This document shows positions 10,376-36,700 of a DNA stretch of 64,000 nucleotides, piece by piece (position 1 is the first letter of the stretch; every line of letters starts with the position of its first letter). The translations under genes were made by a program, and so were the position numbers. The DNA is from Oopsacas minuta (Eukaryota > Animalia > Porifera), in the NCBI GenBank assembly GCA_024704765.1, contig JAKMXF010000300.1, positions 248,001 to 312,000 on the forward strand, given 5' to 3'. The notes beneath the pieces were generated by a model. That model had not been told where the DNA came from. It made no database searches and saw nothing but the letters and a program-made list of their open reading frames with translations.

Positions 10376-13300
10376 ATGATAACTTCCAACAATACGCTAC
10401 TACTAACACGTCTGGAAAAAGTCCCTACGAATGACAAGTTAAACAAGAGACCAGCAAGATTAAGCTCGAAAAAATTTACTAGTACTAGCAAAACTAATGT
10501 AAAATCTGACAATTTATTATTATCTCGCGAAAAAACGGGTTCTAGTTTGCTATATTATAAGAGATTGGAAACGAATCCTGGCTTATCTAAACCTATTTAC
10601 TCACCAGAATTAAACAAAGTGGTCTATCGCGGCATACATGATAACATCAATCATGAATTTATTTCTCATTTCTCTACACCTCTTGAATTCAAGAAAAGAG
10701 ATTCAAATCTTCCCAACTTAAATATTTCACAAAGATTAAAACCTAAGATTACCCCTCTCACATGTACGAGTGGTAATAATCATTTCGGGGTTAGTACGTC
10801 ATCTATCCTCTCCAAACACTGCAGACAGACTAATACATTCAATTGGGTGAAACACAAGATTCCTCTTCCTCCTCCAAACCTCGAACAGGTAGAGCGAAAA
10901 CTCTATCCTCATCGGTTTAAAATTGTGCTCAAAGATATCACAACTTTCTTCTATATACCTTCTCCACCTCCTCCCATGCGAGAGGTGATCATACTACTTG
11001 AATTGATACCACCCCCACCTCCTGATATACCCAGATATCTTATGAGTGGGATTCATTCTAAAACAATTAAAGTTAGAACTGACCGTGTTCCTAATCCTAT
11101 TTTATCTATTATACCCGATCCTCCACCGAACCTGCCTAATGAATCTCAACCAATTCTGGACAGAATAGATCCTACTGGAAGTGACTTTCGCGCAGCACAT
11201 TTACTCGAAATTGTGAAAGCTGCTAATCTCAGAGAAAAGGAAAGAATTTCTAAATCTCAAAAAGCAGTCATTAGAGATAACAGAAATACAAATCCTGTAG
11301 ACTTTCATGCAATACATTTACAGGAAATTATAAATGTTGCTAACCTCAGAGAGAAAGAAAGAATTTCTAAATCTCAAAAAGTGAACATGTTGCTTGAATT
11401 GATTCCATCTCCACCCCCTGATATACCCAGTTATCTACTCAGTGAGATTATTCCTCAAACGATTAAAATTAGAACTGACTGTATCCCAAACCCGATCCTA
11501 TCTATTATACCCGATCCTCCACCAAACTTACCCAATGAATCTCAACCAATTCGGGACAGATCAGATTCTAATGGTAGTTGGGATTCTATTATTTCTCCTA
11601 CTGATGCATCTGACTTTCGTGCAGCACATCTACAGGAAATTGTGAAAGTTGCTAACCTCAGAGAGAAAGAAAGAATTTCTAAATCTCAAAAAGTGATCAT
11701 GTTGCTTGAATTGATTCCATCTCCACCCCCTGATATACCCAGTTATCTACTCAGTAAGATTATTCCTCAAACAATCAAAATTAGAACTGACTGTATCCCA
11801 AACCCTATCCTATCTATTATACCCGATCCTCCACCAAACTTACCCAATGAATCTCAACCAATTCGGGACAGAACAGATTCTAATGGTAGTTGGGATTCTA
11901 TTCTTTCTCCTACTGATGCATCTGACTTTCGTGCAGCACATCTACAGGAAATTGTGAAAGTTGCTAATCTCAGAGAGAAAGAAAGAATTTCTAAATCTCA
12001 AAAAGTGATTATGTTTCTTGAATCAGATTCTACTGATAGTTGGGATTCTATTATTTCTCCTACTGATGCATCTGACTTTCGTGCAGCACATCTACAGGAA
12101 ATTGTGAAAGTTGCTAATCTCAGAGAGAAAGAAAGAATTTCTAAATCTCAAAAAGTGATCATGTTGCTTGAATTGATTCCATCTCCACCCCCTGATATAC
12201 CCAGTTATCTACTCAGTAAGATTATTCCTCAAACAATCAAAATTAGAACTGACTGTATCCCAAACCCTATCCTATCTATTATACCCGATCCTCCACCAAA
12301 CCTGCCTAATGAATCTCGAATAACCACACCTCCATTTCTGAAAAGATCAGCAGATTCTGCTGGAAGTTGGGATTCCACTATTCCTCCCGATTCAACCAAC
12401 TTTCATGCAATACATTTACAAGAAATTGTATACGTAGCTAATCTCAGAGAAAAAGATAGAATTTATAAATCTCAAAAGGTGATCATGCTGTTTCAATCAA
12501 TACCATCTCCTCCTCCTGATATACCATACTATAAATCTACTGGCAATTTGCCTCAGGTGATCAAGGGTAATCGTGTTTCTAATCCAGTATTATTAAGGAT
12601 ACCCAATCCTCCACCAAACTTGCCTAATGAATCTGAAGTACCATCACCTCCTTTTCTGGACAGATCAGATTCTACTATTTCCCCTACTGATTCCAACTTT
12701 CGTGCCGTACACTTAAAGGAAATCGTAAAAGTTGCTAATCATCGGGAGAAAGAAAGAATTTCTAAATCTCAAAAAGCAGTCATTAGAGATTACAGAAATA
12801 CAAATCCTGTAGACTTTCATGCGAAACATTTACAGGAAATTGTAAATGTTGCTAATCTCAGAGAGAAAGAAAGAATTTCTAAATCTCAAAAGGTGATCAT
12901 GTTGCCTGAATTGATTCCATCTCCACCCCCTGATATACCCAGTTATCTACTCAGTAAGATTATTCCTCAAACAATCAAAATTAGAACTGACCGTATCCCA
13001 AATCCTATCCTATCTATTATACCCGATCCTCCACCAAACTTACCCAATGAATCTCAACCAATTCGGGACAGATCAGATTCTTCTGGAAGTTGGGATTCTA
13101 TTCTTTCTCCTGATTCAACCGACTTTCATGCAATACATTTACAAGAAATTGTAAACGTTGCTAACTTCAGAGAAAAAGATAGAATTTCTAAATCCCAAAA
13201 TGTAATCAGAGGAGATAACAGAAATACAAATCCTGTAGACTTTCGTGCAATACATTTACAGGAAATTGTTACCGCAGCTAATCTCAGAGATAAATCCACA

Positions 13301-14854
13301 AAGAAATTCAAAAATATTCTTCAAGTTAGCGATCGTAACTTTCCTCAACTACACCTAGAGGAAATACAAAGAACATCACTAGATAGACAACAAGAAAGAT
13401 ACGATACCAAAAACCTTCCCACCATACAATCCACCAGATTATCTATCTGTCTGCCTTGCTTAAAAAAGAAATCCTATTTTCTAAAACTTATTTCTGCGCT
13501 TGGATTAACTCCTGTTAATAATGATATATTTATTCATAAACATACTCAATCTTCTATCAAATTTCCGATTGAGGAAATTTTGAATCTCTTAACTGAAGTA
13601 GAGAATAATTTACTCATGGATAAACCTATTCGCGAAATTTTACCTCAATGTATTTGGAATATATGCGCTTCATCCTACCCTGATTTGACACGATCCTATA
13701 ACCATATGTCACGGCATTTGACAGCCGAAATGTACAATAGACTCTCAAAACTGAAAACAGCATCTGGATTCACAATCGATCAAGCCATACAAACAGGAGT
13801 AGATAATCCAGGAGATCCATTTAGCCTATCTGTAGGCTGTGTAGCAGGTGATGAAGATTCCTATTCAAAATTTTCAGAGTTATTTGATCCAGTTATCTAT
13901 AGTGCTAACAATGGCTATACACTTGATAGAGTTCATTGTTCTGATTTCGATCCTTACTCAATTAAAGATGGCTATTTCGATCCTAATTACGTCTTATCTT
14001 GTCAAGTGCTAGCTGCTCGTAGCATCAAAGGTTTCCCTCTGTTACCACACTGTACACGAGGTGAACGTCGTGGTGTTGAAAATGTTGTAAAAGAATGCAT
14101 TACAAACATGCCACATCCATTCAAAGGTAGTTACTATCCTCTTAGCAGTATTAAACAAGATGTCCATGGATATCTTACTGCACGTAATTTTCTATTCACT
14201 AAGCCTACATCTCCCTTAATAATATCAGCCAGAATGAATAGAGGCTGGCCAGATGCTAGAGCCATGTGGTTAAACAGAGATGAGAATTTCATGGCGTGGG
14301 TTAATACAGAAGATCATATAAGGTTAATTTCAATGGAAGAGGGTGGAGATTTTAAAAGTGTGTTTGAGAGGTTTTGCTTGGGCGTACAGCTGTTTGAAAT
14401 GACGGTATCATTAAGGGGACATGCTGTAATGAAGAGCGATCATCTTGGTTATTTATTAACCTGTCCATCTAATCTTGGTACAGGTATGATTATAACTATT
14501 ACTATGACGTCACCGAAATTACTTTCATATCCTGGATTTGAGATTATTCTTGAATTCCTTCGTCTGGAAAAGAAAGGGAAAATTGACTCGAAAACTGGAG
14601 AATTTCAAGTATGCAATAAAGATAGACTAGGATTCACTGAAGTTGAGTTAGCTCAAAGTCTCATCCATAGTGTACAGCTACTTATAAGAATTGAGAAGAC
14701 ACTTTGGTCAGGTTTGGATTTAATAAAGTTCCTACAAGAGGTCAAACCTGAATTAGCTAATCTTCTTCTCGTAGGTGTATACCCTAAAGATAATTACAAC
14801 AGAATTATGATACCAAAATTTATTCCTTCTTATCCTGCAGATATCTTGGCCTAA
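10376..14854 (+). CDS. Creatine-kinase-like phosphagen kinase domain (probably catalytically impaired) behind a ~1100 aa repetitive N-terminus
   Basis: Single 1492 aa ORF. From ~13676 it reads YPDL...NHMSRHLT, TASGFTIDQAIQTGVDNPG, GCVAGDEDSY, WVNTEDHIRLISME, LTCPSNLGTG and DRLGFTEVE, all creatine kinase fold motifs. Confidence 0.88.
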   Translation: MITSNNTLLLTRLEKVPTNDKLNKRPARLSSKKFTSTSKTNVKSDNLLLSREKTGSSLLYYKRLETNPGLSKPIYSPELNKVVYRGIHDNINHEFISHFSTPLEFKKRDSNLPNLNISQRLKPKITPLTCTSGNNHFGVSTSSILSKHCRQTNTFNWVKHKIPLPPPNLEQVERKLYPHRFKIVLKDITTFFYIPSPPPPMREVIILLELIPPPPPDIPRYLMSGIHSKTIKVRTDRVPNPILSIIPDPPPNLPNESQPILDRIDPTGSDFRAAHLLEIVKAANLREKERISKSQKAVIRDNRNTNPVDFHAIHLQEIINVANLREKERISKSQKVNMLLELIPSPPPDIPSYLLSEIIPQTIKIRTDCIPNPILSIIPDPPPNLPNESQPIRDRSDSNGSWDSIISPTDASDFRAAHLQEIVKVANLREKERISKSQKVIMLLELIPSPPPDIPSYLLSKIIPQTIKIRTDCIPNPILSIIPDPPPNLPNESQPIRDRTDSNGSWDSILSPTDASDFRAAHLQEIVKVANLREKERISKSQKVIMFLESDSTDSWDSIISPTDASDFRAAHLQEIVKVANLREKERISKSQKVIMLLELIPSPPPDIPSYLLSKIIPQTIKIRTDCIPNPILSIIPDPPPNLPNESRITTPPFLKRSADSAGSWDSTIPPDSTNFHAIHLQEIVYVANLREKDRIYKSQKVIMLFQSIPSPPPDIPYYKSTGNLPQVIKGNRVSNPVLLRIPNPPPNLPNESEVPSPPFLDRSDSTISPTDSNFRAVHLKEIVKVANHREKERISKSQKAVIRDYRNTNPVDFHAKHLQEIVNVANLREKERISKSQKVIMLPELIPSPPPDIPSYLLSKIIPQTIKIRTDRIPNPILSIIPDPPPNLPNESQPIRDRSDSSGSWDSILSPDSTDFHAIHLQEIVNVANFREKDRISKSQNVIRGDNRNTNPVDFRAIHLQEIVTAANLRDKSTKKFKNILQVSDRNFPQLHLEEIQRTSLDRQQERYDTKNLPTIQSTRLSICLPCLKKKSYFLKLISALGLTPVNNDIFIHKHTQSSIKFPIEEILNLLTEVENNLLMDKPIREILPQCIWNICASSYPDLTRSYNHMSRHLTAEMYNRLSKLKTASGFTIDQAIQTGVDNPGDPFSLSVGCVAGDEDSYSKFSELFDPVIYSANNGYTLDRVHCSDFDPYSIKDGYFDPNYVLSCQVLAARSIKGFPLLPHCTRGERRGVENVVKECITNMPHPFKGSYYPLSSIKQDVHGYLTARNFLFTKPTSPLIISARMNRGWPDARAMWLNRDENFMAWVNTEDHIRLISMEEGGDFKSVFERFCLGVQLFEMTVSLRGHAVMKSDHLGYLLTCPSNLGTGMIITITMTSPKLLSYPGFEIILEFLRLEKKGKIDSKTGEFQVCNKDRLGFTEVELAQSLIHSVQLLIRIEKTLWSGLDLIKFLQEVKPELANLLLVGVYPKDNYNRIMIPKFIPSYPADILA
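10980..13400 (+). repeat. Coding tandem array of two modules: proline-rich (~55 aa, 6 copies) and helical (~27 aa, 10 copies plus 1 degenerate)
   Basis: Near-identical copies of MLLELIPSPPPDIPSYLLSKIIPQTIKIRTDCIPNPILSIIPDPPPNLPNES and DFRAAHLQEIVKVANLREKERISKSQK, visible in both DNA and protein. Confidence 0.95.
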
Positions 14855-15082: not shown

Positions 15083-15127
15083 ATCACACTTTTGAATTGA
15101 TGATTATTTTAATGTACTTTGTTTAGC

Positions 15128-17026
15128 ATGGCAAACCAATCACAACAACCAACTCTACTCGATGTTCTTCTGAGGCTTAACAAATATGTTAAAGAAAACC
15201 CTAGCAACCTAGAGAGCTTAAAGGAATGCATCTATTCCCATCCAGTTATCTACTGCGATAATGTACCATTAGCTATAGAGTGTGCTCGTGGTTGTTTCAG
15301 ATTTTCTAAACTTATAGATACCACTGTTACTCACTTCTTCAAACACCCATTTGGTGAAACTGCTTCTAAAATGGATTCTCCTTTATATCGTGCTATAACC
15401 TACCTCGTAATTTTCCAGTTTTCAAAGTTAGGACTTGAACAATTCACTCAAATAATACGAACACAAGCACCAAGAAACATATACTTTTACTTATCATATT
15501 TACTTGATCAAGAAAATATACAAACTTGGTTCTATCAAGAATGGTGTAAGAGTTATGACACTGAATTTATTGACAATAACATCCGAAAACCACTACTAAA
15601 CATCTCTGAAGAGTTATGCGATTATTTACAAATTCTAAATAACAAAATTGATAGTAAACAAATACCCAAGCTGCCAAGCATACCCAAAATCCCCAACACA
15701 CAAACACTTCTTTTCAATCTAACTCAGTCAAAACCTAAACCAAAACCTGAGCCAGAAGAAGTATCAATTAAACTTCACTATAAACCAGTTGATCCTAAAA
15801 TATACCAAGAGCCTAATGAAATTACACAGATTGAAAGAGCTAGAGAGAATAATAGAAAGAATGCTGGTAAGAAACTGTTAGAAGCTCAGAAGAATCGTCC
15901 CAGATGCTCTAACTGGGAAAAATCTGATAAAACTAAAGCAAAGATACAGGAAATAATGGATGAGCGTGATAGTGCATTTACAGAGTCTCATACTCGTAAA
16001 GCTAAGCCTTATATACCTCCCAAACAGGATGATAATCTGGTGAAGAAAAACGCAGCTAGCATTCTGAGGGAAGGAATTATTTTCCAGAAAGAGGAGCAGA
16101 AGAAAATACAGGAAATACTGCACTTAGAAGCTGGTGGTAAAGATGCTGGTGAGTATTACAGATGGCAAGGCACTGTACTAGAGGAACAGCTGGAGAAGGA
16201 ACAGTTTGAGATAGAAAAGAAACATCTTTTGGGTAGAATAACATATGAAGAAGCTATTATAGCCAAACAACAGCTGAGTGAGGATAATAAAGTACTTGTT
16301 GAACAGTTGAAAGAGGAGCGACAAGCCCTCTTGGAGGAGTATTTCAAGCAGAGGGAGGAAGAGAAGAAGAAAATGCAGAGATTAGTTGAAGAGATAGCTG
16401 CTGGGAAAGAGAATGCTAAACTAGCACAAGAGAATCTCAAGGAAATGAAAAGGAAAATTGTTGAGCAAGTTTCAAGAGAGAATAAAGCTATGATGCAGGC
16501 TGCTATTGAAATGGCTCAAGCTGAGATGGAAAAGAAAATGGAAATGATACAACAAATACGAGCTATGGAGAAGGTACCTATTATTCGTGTACAGTTCTTT
16601 GACACTACAGAGACTGGAGGTCATGGATTGTTATCAGAGATGTCAGTTGCTGAACTTAATGAGAGAATTAATCTCATGAAAATAGCAATGCAGGAAGATG
16701 AAGAGAAGAAACGGAATGAGATTAATCTGGGAAAGAAAGAACGTAACGAGATGTTAGAATCTACTATAGAGTATATAAAGGAAGCTAGATACAATCAACA
16801 ACTTGAATCTGCTAAGAATAAGAATGTATTGTCTACAAAACAAGCGAGCAAAAAGGCACAAACAAATCCTGAAGTGTTAGCTCTGAAAGAAAGACTCCTG
16901 TCTAGCCAGAATGTTAGAAGAGAGAAGAAAGAGCTATTATCTTCTCCCAAACACTCTTCTAAGAAAGAAGAGGTTTTTCGTTCAGCTAATATTCCCAACA
17001 AGTCTGTATTAGCTGGTATACTATAG
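15128..17026 (+). CDS. CFAP99: Cilia- and flagella-associated protein 99
   Basis: FYQEWCKSYD..FI...IRKPL, KKNAASILREG, LEAGGKDAGEYYRWQ, GRITYEEAIIAKQ and GHGLLSEMSVAELNERI match the CFAP99 pattern; coiled-coil C-terminal half. First ATG at 15128. Confidence 0.8.
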   Translation: MANQSQQPTLLDVLLRLNKYVKENPSNLESLKECIYSHPVIYCDNVPLAIECARGCFRFSKLIDTTVTHFFKHPFGETASKMDSPLYRAITYLVIFQFSKLGLEQFTQIIRTQAPRNIYFYLSYLLDQENIQTWFYQEWCKSYDTEFIDNNIRKPLLNISEELCDYLQILNNKIDSKQIPKLPSIPKIPNTQTLLFNLTQSKPKPKPEPEEVSIKLHYKPVDPKIYQEPNEITQIERARENNRKNAGKKLLEAQKNRPRCSNWEKSDKTKAKIQEIMDERDSAFTESHTRKAKPYIPPKQDDNLVKKNAASILREGIIFQKEEQKKIQEILHLEAGGKDAGEYYRWQGTVLEEQLEKEQFEIEKKHLLGRITYEEAIIAKQQLSEDNKVLVEQLKEERQALLEEYFKQREEEKKKMQRLVEEIAAGKENAKLAQENLKEMKRKIVEQVSRENKAMMQAAIEMAQAEMEKKMEMIQQIRAMEKVPIIRVQFFDTTETGGHGLLSEMSVAELNERINLMKIAMQEDEEKKRNEINLGKKERNEMLESTIEYIKEARYNQQLESAKNKNVLSTKQASKKAQTNPEVLALKERLLSSQNVRREKKELLSSPKHSSKKEEVFRSANIPNKSVLAGIL

Positions 17027-29196: not shown

Positions 29197-32100
29197 ATGG
29201 GAGATGGAATGCTAGCTACACTTTTCGGTACAGATTTCATTCATTGTCGTATGGATGGACTTTGTATTGGGAAATTCAAGTTCTCCAGCGACAGAGAAGA
29301 TTACCTTATATGGCTAAGTCCAATTAGAGAAGATATCTCTAGCTTTACACTGAATCTATTTCATGTACCAACTTCTGATACATTTAGTGGACATTTCACT
29401 ACAGCATATGTCAGTCAGCTGACACAGAAAACTGGTTCAATCAAAGATTTTAAAACATTCTTGAATATGTTAAAATCTGCCTTGTCACAAAAATCTCGAT
29501 CAGTGAGGATAGAATTTCTGTCTACAGAAGAGATACAAGCATTGAAAGGGAATACAGCTACTACTGGTCATACTCATAAATGCTATATTCTCCTGTCTTA
29601 TAACTCTGAGTATGATCAAGTTCGTTACCCAATTCCACTAACCTTTATCGGTAATTTTAGTTTAATTATTTATGTCGCATATTTTCAATTTCATCTTCTA
29701 TTTTTAGGTAAACTGGATCACTTAACTCTCCTCGAGTGTGTTTTGAATGTTCAGTATTCGAAAGGAGGGAATATTCTAGAAGCGAGGCCAGTTGATAGAG
29801 CTACCGAGAAGGACAGAGAGGAGATTAATAGACTACTTCATGATAAGAGAGAATTAGAGGAAGAAATTCAGATATTAAGGCATTTCCAAAGGAGAGAAGA
29901 TACAGAGATTCCATCCAAGGAAATCAAGGTACACAAAAATTTATTCTTATTTCATTATGTTATTTGTCATTCTACAGGTCTTGAAACGTGTAATTCGGAG
30001 TCTTGAACAAGACCTACTGATTGAGAAATCACAACACAAGAAGTTCGCTAGTAAGAAGAACGATGAGTATAGTCGAATAGGTTCTGAGCTAGATAGACTC
30101 AGAGCTTCAGAGAGAACTTTAAAAATACGAGTCAAAAATCTTACAGAAGAATTAGCTACTATTAGGAGACATCGTGTATCAATGAGTCCAATTGTCTCTA
30201 GTACACAGCCGGGGAGGAGACGATCTCTGAGTGCGGATAGGGGTAGAAGCAGTACTCCTGTTAGTAGAAATACTAGCAAGGAGAGATATGTAAGGCGGAG
30301 GTCATCATCTCTTGAAAAACCAGGTAAGTCAATTCTGTATTGTTTAAGAGATTGATTTAACAGAATATTCTTTAATGAGTAGCTTATTTAGCAAATGTAC
30401 AAATATCATTATGGAATAGTTACACAAACACAAATTTATTATACAACTTAGTTCTCCATAAGAAGAGGTTCTAGTAGTGCTTTGTTTATTCTGTAAGTAT
30501 GACCTTTTCCAGTGCATTTGTCATAGATATAGTTTGCCAGATAAAAGAAGAGAATGCAGAATGATGGTGTCATTAGTATTGTTAAGAAAAGTAAGAAATG
30601 GGTGAAAGGTACCCATCTGATTACCTCCTCAAATATTGAATATTGTATGAATTTGTTTGTGACATTAAAATTGAGATCAATATTATAGACATCTTTCACA
30701 TAGCACTGTCCTGTTAGTACTAACTGTAATGTAAAGGTTAAAAATGCGAATATCGCTCCTATAGGTAAGAAACTAAATGCTGCGAAAATAAATCTGAATG
30801 TGATTTTGTAGAATTTTAGATTTATTTGATGATTTCTGTATTGAGTTAGGTTGGATTCAAAATTTCGAATTTCTTTTATTTTTGACCTAATAGCATTTAT
30901 CATATTCTTCCTAGTGCGATAAAGATTCCATAAATTCAAAACCGATAATAGCGTTATAGCTGGGAATATGAATAGTTGAAGTTGTCTTATACAGAATATC
31001 GTTTGCACTAGCCATTGGGAAATCCAGAAACAAATGTACTTGAAACGAGTTTTTCTTGGCAATTCATGTCTGAAATAACGCGCAGCTAAATACGAATTCA
31101 AATATGAGATTAACATAATCTGTGTGATAACCAACATATCTGCAGATATGTATATGAGAACTGTTTCTGGATATATGTTAGTGTATGCGATGAATTTGTT
31201 AATTGTACAAGGAAATTTCTTTTTAATCTTTTGTGGATCAACATGGCTCGCATAGAAAGTTTTCTCTATGGCAAAGGGCGCAACTAACGAGGAAAATGCA
31301 AAAATTATTATGTCGATTATAATTATTGTGAGCAAGAAGGCATCTCTGTATCTGACTGTTTCCAAATTATAAAGATTTTCTTTTCGAACTTGAGAATCGG
31401 CGTCATACGTTTCAATACAGCCCTTACGTTTCTTATACGTTATGCTTAAACGGTAAATAAGTATTATCATCCAAAACAGCAAGCAAATCAAACCTAAGCT
31501 TCCAACGAATGCAAATAGCGGAACCTGAATTTCTCCACTACTAACCATTTTTCTATATTACTTCTTTTACAAAAGATGAGTTTATATACGTATAAATGGT
31601 AATATTCTGTCAGTATTTAGCTGTATATTTCCTAATTTATATCCACGTGTTTTATTCATTTATTGTTTGCATATTGGGTTACATAATATCATATTGTATT
31701 TTATGTAAAACTTTTAAACTATCCTAACTTGTAGTTACAGATGAAAGAATGTCGAGAAGGCAAGAATACCTTCATTCACAGCAAAATATGGGAAGCAGAT
31801 CTAGGACACCCTCACCTCGTTTCGACCCTACAGCGTATATTCGTGAGCGGACACGAAAAAGAACTGAGAGCGGAGGAAAGAAAAATCGACCACCATCTTT
31901 CCCTAATCAGCGAAATGGTAACCGTATTCGCTCTAGATCACACTCAAGGGAGAGTTATCGCCCTGGGGTGTCTAACGGAGGTAGATGGTCTCACTATTCA
32001 TCAGCTAGCAGTCTAGATTCATCACCAAACGAATATCTGACACGAGATGGTAACTACAGACGAAAACACTATTCCCGAGAATCTATTCATTCTCTAAACT

Positions 32101-32276
32101 CAATTCAAGACAGTAGTACCCCTGTACACAAGAATAGTAAACGTGGCTTCAGATCTAAAAGCAAAGATACGAAACAGCCGAGAACTAAATCTAAACAATC
32201 TTTAGACCACTCGATTAATCTCTCTGATATTGATCAGAGATTGAAAGCACTGAAATTTTTAATTCACGATCACTGA
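29197..32276 (+). CDS. CCDC61: Centrosomal coiled-coil protein CCDC61/VFL3 (4 exons; large intron 30324-31740)
   Basis: QLTQKTGSIKDFKTFLNMLKSAL, YILLSYNSEYDQVRYPIPL.FIG|KLD, PSPRFDPTAYI and DIDQRLKAL. The junction CCA G|AT GAA across 30324-31740 keeps frame. Confidence 0.88.
30448..31548 (-). CDS. Orphan 7-transmembrane (GPCR-like topology) protein, intronless, nested in CCDC61 intron
   Basis: 366 aa ORF with seven hydrophobic segments counted by eye; C-terminus ..ALLEPLLMEN; similar pattern to 42169-43221 and 43880-45025. Confidence 0.72.
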   Translation of the reverse strand: MVSSGEIQVPLFAFVGSLGLICLLFWMIILIYRLSITYKKRKGCIETYDADSQVRKENLYNLETVRYRDAFLLTIIIIDIIIFAFSSLVAPFAIEKTFYASHVDPQKIKKKFPCTINKFIAYTNIYPETVLIYISADMLVITQIMLISYLNSYLAARYFRHELPRKTRFKYICFWISQWLVQTIFCIRQLQLFIFPAITLLSVLNLWNLYRTRKNMINAIRSKIKEIRNFESNLTQYRNHQINLKFYKITFRFIFAAFSFLPIGAIFAFLTFTLQLVLTGQCYVKDVYNIDLNFNVTNKFIQYSIFEEVIRWVPFTHFLLFLTILMTPSFCILFFYLANYIYDKCTGKGHTYRINKALLEPLLMEN

Positions 32277-33023
32277 CATCAATATCATAATTATTATCTA
32301 TATCCGTATGCACTGTTTTTATTTTAATGCTGCTGGCCCTACTCAGTACACTTTATCACATCTCATTCGTTGTTATTTACACTTTTCAGGAAGGTTTCAT
32401 GCTTAAACCATAGACACATACGAACAAACTTGTCTAATTAAGTCGAATTCTACTATAATAGTTTTGTATTATAACTAGGGGTAAATAATGTTTTATAACC
32501 CAATTCAATCTACTCCCAATCGATAGTTATTCAGGTACAAAATTCAATTTGGAATATGAACTTTGTACCTGAATATATCATACTTACAAACCCTAATTAT
32601 CCCAGGATTTTACAGGAAATCTAATTCATTTTTGCAAATTTAACTTGATTATACCAATTATTCCAAAGAAATCCATTGTTATAATTTTTGTTTCTTTACC
32701 AATACCACCCATTCTTCCTTCTTTTTCTTAAAATCATTCTCCCAACTTCCCCACTAGCAACTTATGTACTATTTATCTTGTAATCTACTGTATTACATAC
32801 TATTATTACATTTATATCAGGTGCAGTGTATGCCTTGTGCTAACACCCTGTACTTTCTAATTTTATCTGACAGTGCACTTTCTAATTTCCATCACCTCCA
32901 ATAAGTAATATACTTATGTATTCATGAAATAGAACTTATTGTATACTGTCATAGCGGGTATAACGGGTGTTAACTGTATGTTCATTTGTATTTCATATTT
33001 AGTATAAACTGTCCGTGAATAAG

Positions 33024-33500
33024 ATGATTAGGTTCCTTGGAATTTCTCGTCGTCTCATGAGTACTACTCCAGCACTCCGTACTGTCACCAGACAGGACCC
33101 ATACAATCATATGGAGGTTTACGGAAGCCTACACCATCCTCTAACTTTACGCTTTGAATATGTTGACAAATCCCCTGACGTCACTTCCCTCATTGAGAAA
33201 GCAAAGGGACCATGGACGGAACTATCTATGGAAGAAAAATATCGCTTATACAGAGGAATGTTTCCATACTCATTTGCTGATATACAAGCTGACGGAGGTA
33301 AGACCTTATACGTCATAACAGGCACTACAATACTGGTTATTGTGGGGATAGGCGTGTTCTTTGTAACTCAGAACATTATGAGCAGATATAAAGAACCTAC
33401 ACGTACTCTAACACCTGAATGGGAGGCTGCGGCTTTGGAGAAAAACCGCGATAATCTTTCTAATCCCGTATTCGGGATGTCATCTAAGAAATACAAATAG
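33024..33500 (+). CDS. COX4: Cytochrome c oxidase subunit 4
   Basis: LIEKAKGPWTELSMEEKYRLYR..F..SFADI, one TM helix, PTRTLTPEW and NPVFGMSSK. Confidence 0.88.
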   Translation: MIRFLGISRRLMSTTPALRTVTRQDPYNHMEVYGSLHHPLTLRFEYVDKSPDVTSLIEKAKGPWTELSMEEKYRLYRGMFPYSFADIQADGGKTLYVITGTTILVIVGIGVFFVTQNIMSRYKEPTRTLTPEWEAAALEKNRDNLSNPVFGMSSKKYK

Positions 33501-33752
33501 ATAAATAGCCAAGATAGGTATAAGACTTTGTCAGTGTTATCCTCGATGTCTTAATTAATGTTTGTAACTCCTCATCGTTTGTTATATTGTTATTAGCTAT
33601 ACTTGATGCGAACTATGCTATTGTCAATGCATCACTTGTAATGATTACTACTCGTTATCTTTTGTGTTATATCGAGATATTAAGGTTTAGTTCCTATTTC
33701 ATATTATCGAAGTTCCACTATATATTAGTTTCATAATCTAGCTACTCTGTTT

Positions 33753-36700
33753 ATGGCTGAAAAACAAGAAAGAGGGCGAGGTAGGGGTAGACGTTTGTAC
33801 AAACAGAATCCAAGTTTATGTTCTACCGATCATAATTCTTACAGAGTGAGTGGTACAGGCGAAGTAATCCCAGAACATACATCTACTATCCCAGAAGAAA
33901 TACTGTCATTAGCACAGACCACACAATTACCTATAGGTGAGATATCAAAGACGATAGATACTCAGTTTGATAGTCCAAACCCTGGTTCTTATGTCTCTGA
34001 TATGAGTAATCTATTTCATGTACGAATCACGGAAGTAATGGATCCTAGTTGTTTCTACGCTATGGTATCTTATAAGCAAGATTTGGATAAGTTTGACCAG
34101 ATGTCAAGTCGTTTAATTGAAGTTTGTGAGTCTTATGAAGCTGAAGAGAATATTATACCAAGGGTGGATGATATCATAGGGGTGAATACAACTAATATTG
34201 AGAATTTTGGTCTGGAGTATAAATGGGTACGAGGGAGAGTTGTTAGAATACACTCGAAAGATGATATTGAGGTTTGTAAACTTATTTGATATGCAGTTAA
34301 CTTCTGTTATATCTAACACACGAATATATCCAAATTCCCGCATATGTTGGAGTACACATTGTACAAATATGTTCCCAAATCGTCAAAGTAATTATCGCGA
34401 TCTCTTGAGCTTCGATATGACAGGAGTTAACTGCATTTCATAACATCTTCCTACTATAGGTTATCCTGCTTGATTTCGGATCATCTCATCATGTGAATAT
34501 AGCTAGCACATGCTTTCGCATAAAAGAGAGTACTTTATTGCCATCATTATGTATGCATTGTGGGTTAGCAGATTGTCAACCTATTGCTAAAGAATGGTCC
34601 AGAGACTCGTGTGATTATTTCCACTCCCTCATTTCCAAATGTACACCGCATCTACGTGGTATTCTATATCTGAGCTCTATATTGAACCCAGTAATAACAG
34701 GTCTAACTCTATACGGTTATAACAGTGAGAAGGGCGGATGGGTTTCATTTGGACATTCTCTCATTGCTGCAGGTTATGCTGTAACTTATCATAATACTAG
34801 TAGAGTACAGTATCAAGCACCAGCTAATCCTACTCTTACAGCTGATGTTACTGCTTGTACTTCTCAACAGGTATAATAATTATTCAAGTTCTGAGGAACG
34901 CTCTGATCTTCACGTTGTATTATTACAGTCAACTCTCGTTATATCGAACACGGATATATCGGAATACTTCCTTTTATACTAGTAATTCTTACTGTCCCTT
35001 GAGCTTCATATAAGGGTAGTTGACTGTGTAAAAAAACAGTAAAATCCGTATAATCAAATCCATTTTCTTTAGTATCAACTTGCAGATTCGACTGTTTCTC
35101 AACCATTCGATACTAAGCAGTATTTATCAATGAGTACAGCTCAATCAAATAACGAGCTACAACAGCAGTTACAAGATATACCCACACACTCATACAATCT
35201 TACTTATACTGAACAAGAAATATTACGGAATATTAATAATGATACTTATTTCACTTATTTTATGACTAGTAATGAGCATAGAATTCGTAGTTTAGACTCT
35301 GTTACTAAGTATGAAGAATTTGTACCAAAGATACATCCTGTAAACATTAACAATGGGAATACAGAGTCTGTGGTTCAACCTGCGGATTTGAACCAGGAAC
35401 CTAGTAATATTACAGAAGCTGAAACAGCTGATAAGGTAGGTTTTAACCTTTGAACTTTGTACATTAGTTAACACCGATTACGACCACTGTTACGAACGTA
35501 ATGAAACAGAACATTACATTCAGCCATTCCCTCCCAAATTCGACATTTTACACTTTTTTGAATCTTCACAAATTCCAAGTTTTAATCTATCTCATAGAGT
35601 TCTCCAAATCAATTGGAACCCTCAGCTACAACTAATCCCTTACAAACAGACTTGGTATCTGCTACGCCCCCACAAACACACAAAATCTCTCCAGGGACTA
35701 AGTCTTCCCGAGGGTTGGGAAGAGGTCACATAATAAAACAGAACATGGAGAGAGCCCGTAGAGGTAAACCTTCATCCCTTGCTTCTAACTCAGATACTGA
35801 ATTGTCTATACAGATAGCTAATATCGTAGTTACATCTAAACCTAATGACCAGAAATCTAATTCTGAACCTCAACATAGTTCTCCTAAACATCCTCCTTCA
35901 CATTCTAGCTCAGATAACCAAGTTGTTACCAAAGATTCAAGTGAAAATGGTGATATAGGAAATGATACTTTAAATATTAGTGAAAGACTTGATGCAAATT
36001 CTAACAGTGATTATGCTGAAGATTTTGAACAGTCATTTGGGCATTCAAAGCATGAATTGCCTAATAAACCGTTTAGAGGCCGTGGTCGTAAATCCCCTGC
36101 TCATTGGAAGAAAGGAGCACAATCTGACAATAGAAATAGACAATTAGGGAAAGATCCGAACCTCCCTCTGGCTACTAAATACGCTAAAAGTATTACTTCT
36201 GAAGCAAAAGCTAAATGTGAACCTACAATACAAGAAACGGAGATAGCACATTTAAAATCTAAACTAGCTGAAGAATTGGATAATCTGTTAGCTAACTTTA
36301 GAGAAGAAACACAGAGGCAATTCCCTGAAAATGTTATGAAGATTTTGAATGATAATCTTTCAAACAAAATTGCTACTATTCTAGGCCCAAAAGGACCTTT
36401 AACAATATTACTTAAATGTATTTTTCAACGTTCAGTTTATCACCCAGAATTCCTGCCTTTCTCATTCATGGTTCTAGCAAGATTATACCCTATGTACAGA
36501 CAAATGATGACTGAGGATATTTCTTCTTCTCTAATTAAAACACATTACGAATTATTGACTGAGGTTAAGGCAGAATCTGATAATTCTGAAGAGTATAAGG
36601 CTAATTATTGTCAGATGATTTCAGCTTGTATCGATTATGTATCGATTAAGGAGATAAATCCAGGTCTTACTGGTATATTGGAATCTGCGATACTTGATTT

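Follow-up and report, generated by a model that had tools for sequence, protein, structure and literature searches.

A creatine-kinase-like protein with an array of proline motifs and amphipathic helices in Oopsacas minuta, possibly a scaffold of actin-regulator type

Creatine kinases (CKs), in which two Pfam domains (PF02807 and PF00217) make up a two-lobed fold, are known to be dimeric, and an arginine cluster has been described as their active site (PMC12467219). Here we describe a gene for a relative of these enzymes in the sponge Oopsacas minuta, found in a stretch of 64,000 nucleotides (contig JAKMXF010000300.1 of assembly GCA_024704765.1, positions 248,001 to 312,000, forward strand) that we call the window. 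The gene is a single exon with one uninterrupted frame of 1492 amino acids (aa), stop codon counted (10376-14854 on the plus strand in the analysis of open reading frames (ORFs); protein P0001), and this frame stays open over 4.5 kb at 35% GC. Its C-terminal part shares the full-length fold of CKs, retains the CPSNLGT motif and matches the CKs of O. minuta itself at 44-52% identity; the best solved relatives are creatine kinases (human/rabbit CK, E 1e-107 to 1e-109 over 350 residues). The window family differs from these enzymes by lost arginines and other active-site residues, by a shortened loop and by forming a separate long-branch clade in the tree. Canonical CKs furthermore lack the N-terminal motif array of 1100 aa and the conserved C-terminal tail that are found in the family.

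The array has likenesses of its own. Spire, Cordon-bleu and the Vibrio proteins VopL and VopF share with it tandem amphipathic helices behind proline tracts, with a WH2-like L-x2-I-x5-L-[KR] spacing. In VopL the C-terminal domain dimerizes the arms, and the folded C-terminal domain of the window protein could do likewise. However, these tandem-WH2 nucleators have 3-4 WH2 copies compared with up to 11 helices in the window family, and the window helix fails the WH2 profile, is without the LKK[TV] element and has an invariant His for Leu, next to a folded domain that is a metabolic kinase, predicted to be dead. With the FH1 region of formins (IPPPPPL in mDia1) the proline motif shares an Ile anchor, a proline run and a hydrophobic anchor, and the identical motif is present in six of the seven formins of the genome. 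Unlike formins, the window protein has no FH2 (none of the FH2 matches of the genome lies in the window), its tracts are interleaved with helices, and the gene has 12 exact motif copies where no formin locus of the genome has more than 3. NAA80 is an enzyme fold with polyproline stretches that recruit profilin-actin (PMC7864067), and it shares with the window protein the combination of a globular enzyme-type fold and proline stretches, which in NAA80 bind profilin. NAA80 is, however, active on actin and has its three stretches in one loop, whereas the window fold is predicted to be inactive and follows a long N-terminal motif array.

We suggest, tentatively and at slightly less than an even chance, that the protein is a multivalent scaffold of actin-regulator type whose core is a CK domain without catalytic function. 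All of its component parts are of known kinds, and it is their combination that is new. Our full-text literature searches found no phosphagen-kinase pseudoenzyme ("creatine kinase" together with "pseudoenzyme" gave unrelated matches) and no architecture joining a phosphagen-kinase fold to motif arrays of the kind found in actin regulators. A dead creatine kinase that is kept under selection, as predicted here, is new.

The kinase domain, its orthologues and the array

The CK domains of seven orthologues, the window protein included, were aligned with four canonical CK domains of the O. minuta genome, namely a 424-aa mitochondrial-type CK, a 370-aa cytosolic-type CK and both halves of a two-domain CK, and residues were numbered as in human CKM. 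The window domain carries the changes R130Q, R132L, E231T, R292I, H296T and R320K and a deletion of 4 aa in the GGVDTAA loop; it retains C283, S285, N286, E232, R236 and R341, and two of the six phosphate-binding arginines are intact. In the four canonical domains, all active-site residues are intact. None of the seven orthologues has R292, H296 or the His of the DHFLF motif, while R130, R132, E231, E232, R236, R320 and R341 are each replaced in varying subsets of them (E232K, for example, in P0007); an eighth species has C283W, and the GGVDTAA closing loop is shortened by 4-6 residues in the family. That the catalytic residues lost are not the same in every lineage is what one would expect after the end of catalysis, and from this alignment we predict that the kinase domain is catalytically dead across the family. 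The PF00217 score is 153 bits for the window domain, compared with 249-262 bits for the four canonical domains. An earlier note on this DNA had described a repeat array attached to a creatine-kinase fold; the fold is confirmed by Pfam and by the CK relatives, but the predicted loss of catalysis, which alters the meaning of the fusion, was missed.

Two of the canonical CKs deserve a comment of their own. The mitochondrial-type CK (424-aa frame; L009, G000:C300:241669-242310) lies about 16 kb upstream on the same contig and strand, and an old local duplication linking it to the dead-kinase gene is possible, though the tree does not group the two. In the two-domain CK, which is encoded in one frame (L011 / L012, G000:C26:about 30800-35600), the domains are identical over about 150 central residues but not in their flanks, and this points to a recent event of gene conversion from one to the other.

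When the repeat region was used as query in a word-index search, six further proteins with this layout (952-1407 aa) came up, each from a different ENA assembly, and in the eighth species the same locus has a frameshift inside the proline repeat. The gene order is common to all eight species, with a mitochondrial carrier (Mito_carr) followed by the array/CK gene, a CFAP99-like gene and a fucokinase-like gene, and each orthologue has the N-terminal block, proline tracts, helix motifs and CK domain. The earlier note had proposed to look for the fusion in other sponges, and a syntenic orthologue is found in seven other assemblies. One frame runs from the conserved start through the kinase domain in seven independent assemblies, which speaks against expression of the kinase domain alone. 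In the pairs P0005/P0006 and P0004/P0006, the ratio of non-synonymous to synonymous substitution rates (dN/dS) is 0.17-0.18 for the conserved block with the proline tracts and 0.14-0.15 both for the helix region and for the CK domain; for the variable N-terminus it is about 0.4 between orthologues. As the array is constrained as strongly as the CK domain (0.14-0.18), we conclude that it is translated, and the low dN/dS of the CK domain despite its lost residues argues that the fold is retained for another, non-catalytic purpose. The closest pair, P0002/P0003, is looser in the array regions (0.35-0.40, CK domain 0.146), and the N-terminal block, at 0.14-0.19 in four of five pairs, reaches 0.40 in this one. 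Together, the eight syntenic orthologues and the constraint on the array bear out the proposal of the earlier note that repeats and kinase fold belong to one protein.

A profile of the N-terminal block, proline tracts and helices (A2) was searched as a hidden Markov model (HMM) over 1.84 billion representative proteins, and it recovered only the array/CK family and one weak match (E 8e-4), a 240-aa protein that shares the proline motif alone. An ESM Atlas search with the N-terminal module gave no usable match. The module appears so far to be restricted to glass-sponge-type assemblies.

In the orthologue of the eighth species (L042:2080-6025) the frameshift lies in an expanded VPSPPPDLPREIST repeat, and the kinase domain has R236A in addition to C283W. 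The frameshift is either a sequencing error in the C-rich repeat or a sign of gene decay in that species.

Within the window gene, a regular-expression scan for [DN]F[RH]AxHLxEIxx[VA]ANxR[ED]K finds 10 strong helix copies (aa 270, 309, 413, 517, 567, 675, 774, 813, 916 and 955), and an eleventh, degenerate copy (NFPQLHLEEIQRTSLDRQQER) begins at aa 989. The 12 exact IPxPPP[DN]xP tracts are arranged as six pairs of the type IPSPPPDIP / IPDPPPNLP between aa 211 and 890, with two additional proline tracts, IPLPPPNLE and IPSPPPPM, further upstream. The earlier note had counted six proline modules and 10-11 helix repeats, and the scan finds them in those numbers and at those places. In each of five long units (99-108 aa) a helix is joined to a proline pair and a spacer rich in Ser and Asp, and in each of three short units (39 aa) a helix is joined to the linker AVIRDNRNTNPV; the periods found by Tandem Repeats Finder are 312 nt (95% matches) and 150 nt (96%). 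The truncated unit that had been noticed at about 12000-12060 is real and corresponds to U4, with a junction near 12014-12025 and a missing proline block of 54 aa. Nucleotide identity among the array copies ranges from 53% to 99%, and the array must therefore hold both old and recent duplications; units U3-U5 are three near-identical copies (95-99%). Recent expansion by unequal exchange, as proposed in the earlier note, agrees with the near-identical units and the truncated one. The older copies, being distinct from one another, make it unlikely that the array is wholly an assembly artefact, although the number of the U3-U5 units could itself be mis-assembled. Among old copies within the gene, the helix cores have synonymous differences of up to 0.63 per site and non-synonymous differences of at most 0.16, with a ratio of the two (pN/pS) of 0.12-0.48.

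The number of helix copies varies from 2 (P0005, P0006) up to 10-11 (window protein, P0002), and the sub-modules that have multiplied are not the same from one lineage to the next. Such variation agrees with rounds of unequal exchange superimposed on a minimal layout that is itself conserved and that consists of the N-terminal block, proline tracts, an SSGSWDS spacer, one type-A helix, one type-B helix, the linker, the kinase domain and the tail.

The proline motif and the helix

As a DNA pattern, IPxPPP[DN]xP has 45 matches in the genome, compared with 0 for a reversed-pattern control, and 12 of the 45 are in the window gene. Six of the seven formin loci account for ten matches, all on the strand of the FH2 and 59-548 nt upstream of it; one of these loci is confirmed as Drf_FH3 plus FH2 with the motifs immediately ahead of FH2. 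Three more matches are in an Abi homologue, which has the domains Abi_HHR and SH3, and two motif loci are downstream of WH1 domains. In two small ORFs (L004, L006) the motif stands 30-50 aa ahead of a WH2 that Pfam recognizes at E about 0.015 (ALFSEIKKGLNLRKV and ALLDNIVQGTQLRHV), and for all genes with the motif shortly ahead of a WH2 the distance is 30-55 aa. A third WH2-linked locus lies 1.5 kb from the best WH2 match of the genome. Five further loci have WH2-like sequence downstream, judged by eye alone. At least 12 of the 25 other motif loci have domain-level evidence for an actin regulator (6 formins, Abi, 2 with WH1 and 3 with WH2 at the Pfam level). That the proline modules are of actin-regulator type had been suggested by the earlier note, and the suggestion holds, with the exact motif at the FH1 position in six of seven formins and ahead of WH2 motifs.

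The FH1 peptide IPPPPPL of mDia1 binds profilin 2a via its Ile and Leu anchors (PMC7864067, citing PDB 2V8F). The sponge motif has the same layout of Ile, prolines and a hydrophobic residue but is one residue longer, and profilin genes are found in the O. minuta genome. Since the motif forms the FH1 of formins and precedes WH2 in this genome, we predict that the array copies are docking sites for profilin or profilin-actin. By analogy this is a reasonable assignment, with other proline-reading domains also possible.

The motif is found with some variations outside the window gene, in loci that include L019-L041, L004 and L006. Asp-type copies often have an aromatic residue 2-3 residues later (PPPDIPQGW, PPPDIPPNW, PPPDMPEDW, PPPDIPxYLL), which hints at a longer recognition motif. 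A small family without a Pfam match (L039:1563-2462 on the plus strand, and P0009 / L018:5001-5723 in another species) has a helical N-terminus and three copies of IPxPPPDIPxxFLLG, an extended form that is also found in the first proline motif of the array units. L004 (1498-1968, minus strand) and L006 (1285-1563, plus strand) each consist of one IPxPPPD[IM]P, an acidic/Ser spacer and a C-terminal WH2 (LRKV, LRHV), and are the closest analogues of one array unit within the genome.

The repeat was called WH2-like in the earlier note, a reading for which some observations speak. Leu, Ile/Val, Leu and Arg are found at the WH2 spacing L-x2-I-x5-L-R, and the upstream proline tract typical of WH2 is present, with IPDPPPNLP 25-35 aa ahead of the helix. 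When the helix profile (A4) was compared by hhalign with a profile of the WH2 sites of the same genome (A5), the two aligned in the expected register with a weak signal (score about 14, P 0.0015-0.003, probability 11-17%), and none of 300 column shuffles reached this score (mean 6.5, maximum 11.8). Ranked among 500 natural 29-residue stretches taken from long ORFs, the main unit of the window array was in the top 0.4% and the LRK[ND]E units in the top 0.2%, and one orthologue unit ending in LKRIT outscored all 500.

Other observations on the helix weigh against WH2 and, with it, against an actin-related role. The profile search that the earlier note had proposed as a check gave none of the 10 array copies at E<=10, whereas the same Pfam model (PF02205) has six sites elsewhere in the genome (three above cut-off); there was likewise no match in the whole protein, in single units, in variant units or in any orthologue. 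The scan does recognize the control ORFs L004 and L006. As Pfam also misses several sequences of the O. minuta genome that look like WH2 by eye, its negative result is not decisive. An HMM of the six WH2 sites of the genome, run against six-frame DNA, placed the window copies at noise (the best score in the family was 7.4 bits, for one orthologue unit), and the reciprocal HMM of the helix motif recovered no WH2. In 27 aligned units the near-invariant residues of the helix are His, Leu and Glu, which are not the WH2 signature; the His occupies the position of the first Leu in the WH2 "LL" (HL for LL), and the WH2 Gly is Ala or Val. In place of LKK[TV], or LRKV, the window copies have LREK, FREK, HREK or LRDK, and an LKR[IV]T ending is confined to three orthologues, with one such unit in each. 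The type-B helix, which all the species have, is without an LKK[TV]-type element and scores at noise level. In the ranking against natural 29-mers, the median for the family reaches no higher than the top 9%, and the type-B units score about average. Structure prediction gave no support, as the AlphaFold2 model of P0006 from an 8-sequence alignment has a mean predicted local distance difference test score (pLDDT) of 36; at this low confidence the model hints at the two helix motifs as long helices.

Other comparisons with the helix were made. The helix profile, searched against PDB sequences, found only a chance 9-residue match to Dps proteins, and BLASTP of L004 and L006 against the repeat units aligned the proline motif and nothing else. 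An AKAP-type docking helix was considered, with the motifs compared by eye to the published pattern, and was rejected, five of six constrained positions fitting and one being polar (Asn or Glu).

Taken together, membership of the helix in WH2 is not established, two of the defining features, namely the profile match and LKK[TV], being absent. That the helix is a divergent binder of actin monomers is, judged by its sequence, a live possibility, although we would sooner expect that it is not.

Proposed role and rival explanations

In the reading that we favor, the gene would encode a scaffold protein restricted to glass sponges, and not an energy-buffering enzyme. The CK fold, without most of the ATP-phosphate arginine cluster and part of the closing loop, would be retained for a non-catalytic role, most likely dimerization or anchoring, as the dimeric/octameric nature of creatine kinases suggests. 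The 12-14 copies of IPxPPP[DN]xP would serve as docking sites for profilin, profilin-actin or other proline readers of the actin machinery. The 10-11 amphipathic helices (F[HR]xLHLQEIVxAAxLREKE) that alternate with them, in a WH2-like location 25-35 aa past a proline tract, are predicted to bind partners, possibly actin monomers. The protein, whose N-terminal half is a long and probably disordered arm, could in this way be a multivalent and probably dimeric platform for the assembly or tethering of actin, with a helix copy number (2 to 11 among species) tuned by unequal crossing-over. The analysis itself shows the architecture with its conservation and selection, the loss of catalytic residues and the proline motif held in common with formins and WH2 proteins; profilin binding, actin binding, dimerization and the cellular role are what we infer. 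A bolder proposal would make the phosphagen-kinase pseudoenzyme the dimeric core of a new class of glass-sponge actin-assembly factors, with FH1-type profilin-actin tracts and up to 11 divergent WH2-like helices. We consider this unlikely, though worth stating; it would imply a lineage-specific need, for example in the actin of syncytial tissue or in actin-templated spicule formation.

Besides the properties of the helix, three points speak against a link to actin. The proline motif is also found in proteins without an evident actin link (an IBR E3 ligase and UBR4-like, WW-domain, SH3-SAM and MTFR-like proteins), three consecutive prolines are a short tract for profilin, so that SH3, WW or EVH1 readers may apply, and the only functional hint from the gene neighborhood is toward cilia (CFAP99), not actin. 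The first two of these fit a generic docking scaffold, in which SH3, WW or EVH1 domains read the proline motifs and the helix binds a lineage-specific partner or folds onto the dead kinase, the protein organizing a signaling or trafficking complex with no contact to actin or profilin. The lack of WH2 membership and the invariant His, Leu and Glu of the helix agree with it as well. We nevertheless think such a scaffold rather unlikely, though a serious contender, as at least 12 of the 25 other motif loci are actin regulators on domain evidence, and the helix has the position and spacing of WH2 with a profile signal that is weak but non-random. The third point suggests a structural protein of cilia or flagella, that is, a relic of a flagellar CK shuttle that lost catalysis and became an axoneme scaffold, its helices docking axonemal partners. 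Multi-domain creatine kinases are known as flagellar enzymes, the O. minuta genome has a two-domain CK, and the CFAP99-like gene is always the next one, 45-431 bp downstream on the same strand in all eight species. Synteny among related species is, however, weak evidence of shared function, the tree does not nest the array/CK family with the two-domain CK, the proline motif is of the formin FH1 type, and the helix breaks the AKAP docking pattern at one of its six constrained positions; a ciliary role is in our view improbable.

Two further explanations concern the kinase and the array themselves. The CPSNLGT cysteine motif, E232 (in six of seven orthologues), D233, W228 and R135 are kept and the CK domain is strongly constrained (dN/dS 0.145), which could be taken to mean that the protein is catalytically active, a phosphagen kinase whose active site is unusual and whose N-terminal arm anchors it for local regeneration of ATP, for instance at sites of actin polymerization. 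With two of six phosphate-binding arginines left in the window protein, R292 and H296 gone in all orthologues, a shortened closing loop and losses that differ by lineage (E232K in P0007, C283W in the eighth species), we find this very improbable. Least credible of all is that the array is an assembly artefact or a non-coding expansion and that the kinase domain alone is expressed. The exact number of the three units that are 95-99% identical could indeed be wrong, and the frame of the eighth species is broken within the proline repeat, but the open frame of 4.5 kb at 35% GC, its persistence as a single frame in seven independent assemblies and the purifying selection on the array, seen between species and between copies, stand against it. 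On account of this conservation and selection we rejected an artefact or non-coding repeat.

If the scaffold reading is true, the gene would show clearly, in a natural setting, how the fold of a core metabolic enzyme can be retained for a structural role, and it would be a candidate lineage-specific actin-assembly factor in hexactinellids, whose syncytial organization is poorly understood at the molecular level. The genome-wide scan is of value in its own right: it identifies the compact motif IPxPPP[DN]xP as the formin FH1 unit of O. minuta and finds it in some two dozen further genes, many of which code for actin regulators. With helix numbers that range from 2 to 11, the family furthermore lends itself to tests of the effect of motif valency on function.

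Features of the gene and its neighbor

A Pfam scan of the whole protein found nothing beyond the two phosphagen-kinase domains, and no FH2. The features of the gene are collected in Table 1.

Table 1. Features of the array/CK gene and of the adjacent gene, in positions of the window
Feature	Position	Strand	Remarks
Whole gene	10376..14854	+	N-terminus (MITSNN..LLTRLEK) and C-terminal tail kept in orthologues
Variable basic Ser-rich N-terminal region, aa 1-139	10376..10792	+	Orthologue dN/dS 0.31-0.43; no Pfam match
Conserved N-terminal block, aa 140-262: FxWVK-IPxPPPNLE-VERKLYPHRFK ... IPSPPPPM ... first proline pair	10793..11161	+	Many columns invariant in 7 orthologues
First proline pair, IPPPPPDIP / IPDPPPNLP	11006-11032 / 11111-11137	+	Inside the conserved N-terminal block
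Repeat array U1-U11: 10 type-A helices (DF[RH]AxHLQEIVxVANLREKERISKSQK), 1 type-B helix (NFPQLHLEEIQ...) and 5 further IPSPPPDIP / IPDPPPNLP pairs	11183..13411	+	Motif scan, Tandem Repeats Finder
Truncated unit U4, 50 aa, helix without proline block	11924..12073	+	Helix part 95-96% identical to U3 and U5; period-150 repeat
Linker with conserved LPxLKKxxYFxxLIxxLGL segment	13412..13693	+	Orthologue consensus; no Pfam match
Phosphagen-kinase N-terminal domain ATP-gua_PtransN (PF02807), aa 1107-1174	13694..13897	+	Pfam E 5.6e-25
Phosphagen-kinase catalytic-type domain ATP-gua_Ptrans (PF00217), aa 1234-1442, degenerate active site	14075..14701	+	Pfam E 2.7e-43
C-terminal tail (LWSGL..L..FLQEVKPELANLLLVGVYPK...)	14702..14851	+	Orthologue tails end in a further IPxPPPDI motif; window copy degenerate (IPSYPADILA)
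CFAP99-like coiled-coil neighbor, separate gene	15119..17026	+	77% identical to the neighbor of P0002, which has PF27956 CFAP99_CC

The CFAP99-like gene begins 265 bp downstream of the window gene on the same strand. Compared with P0002, this neighbor is the better conserved of the two genes, the kinase-array protein being about 56% identical.

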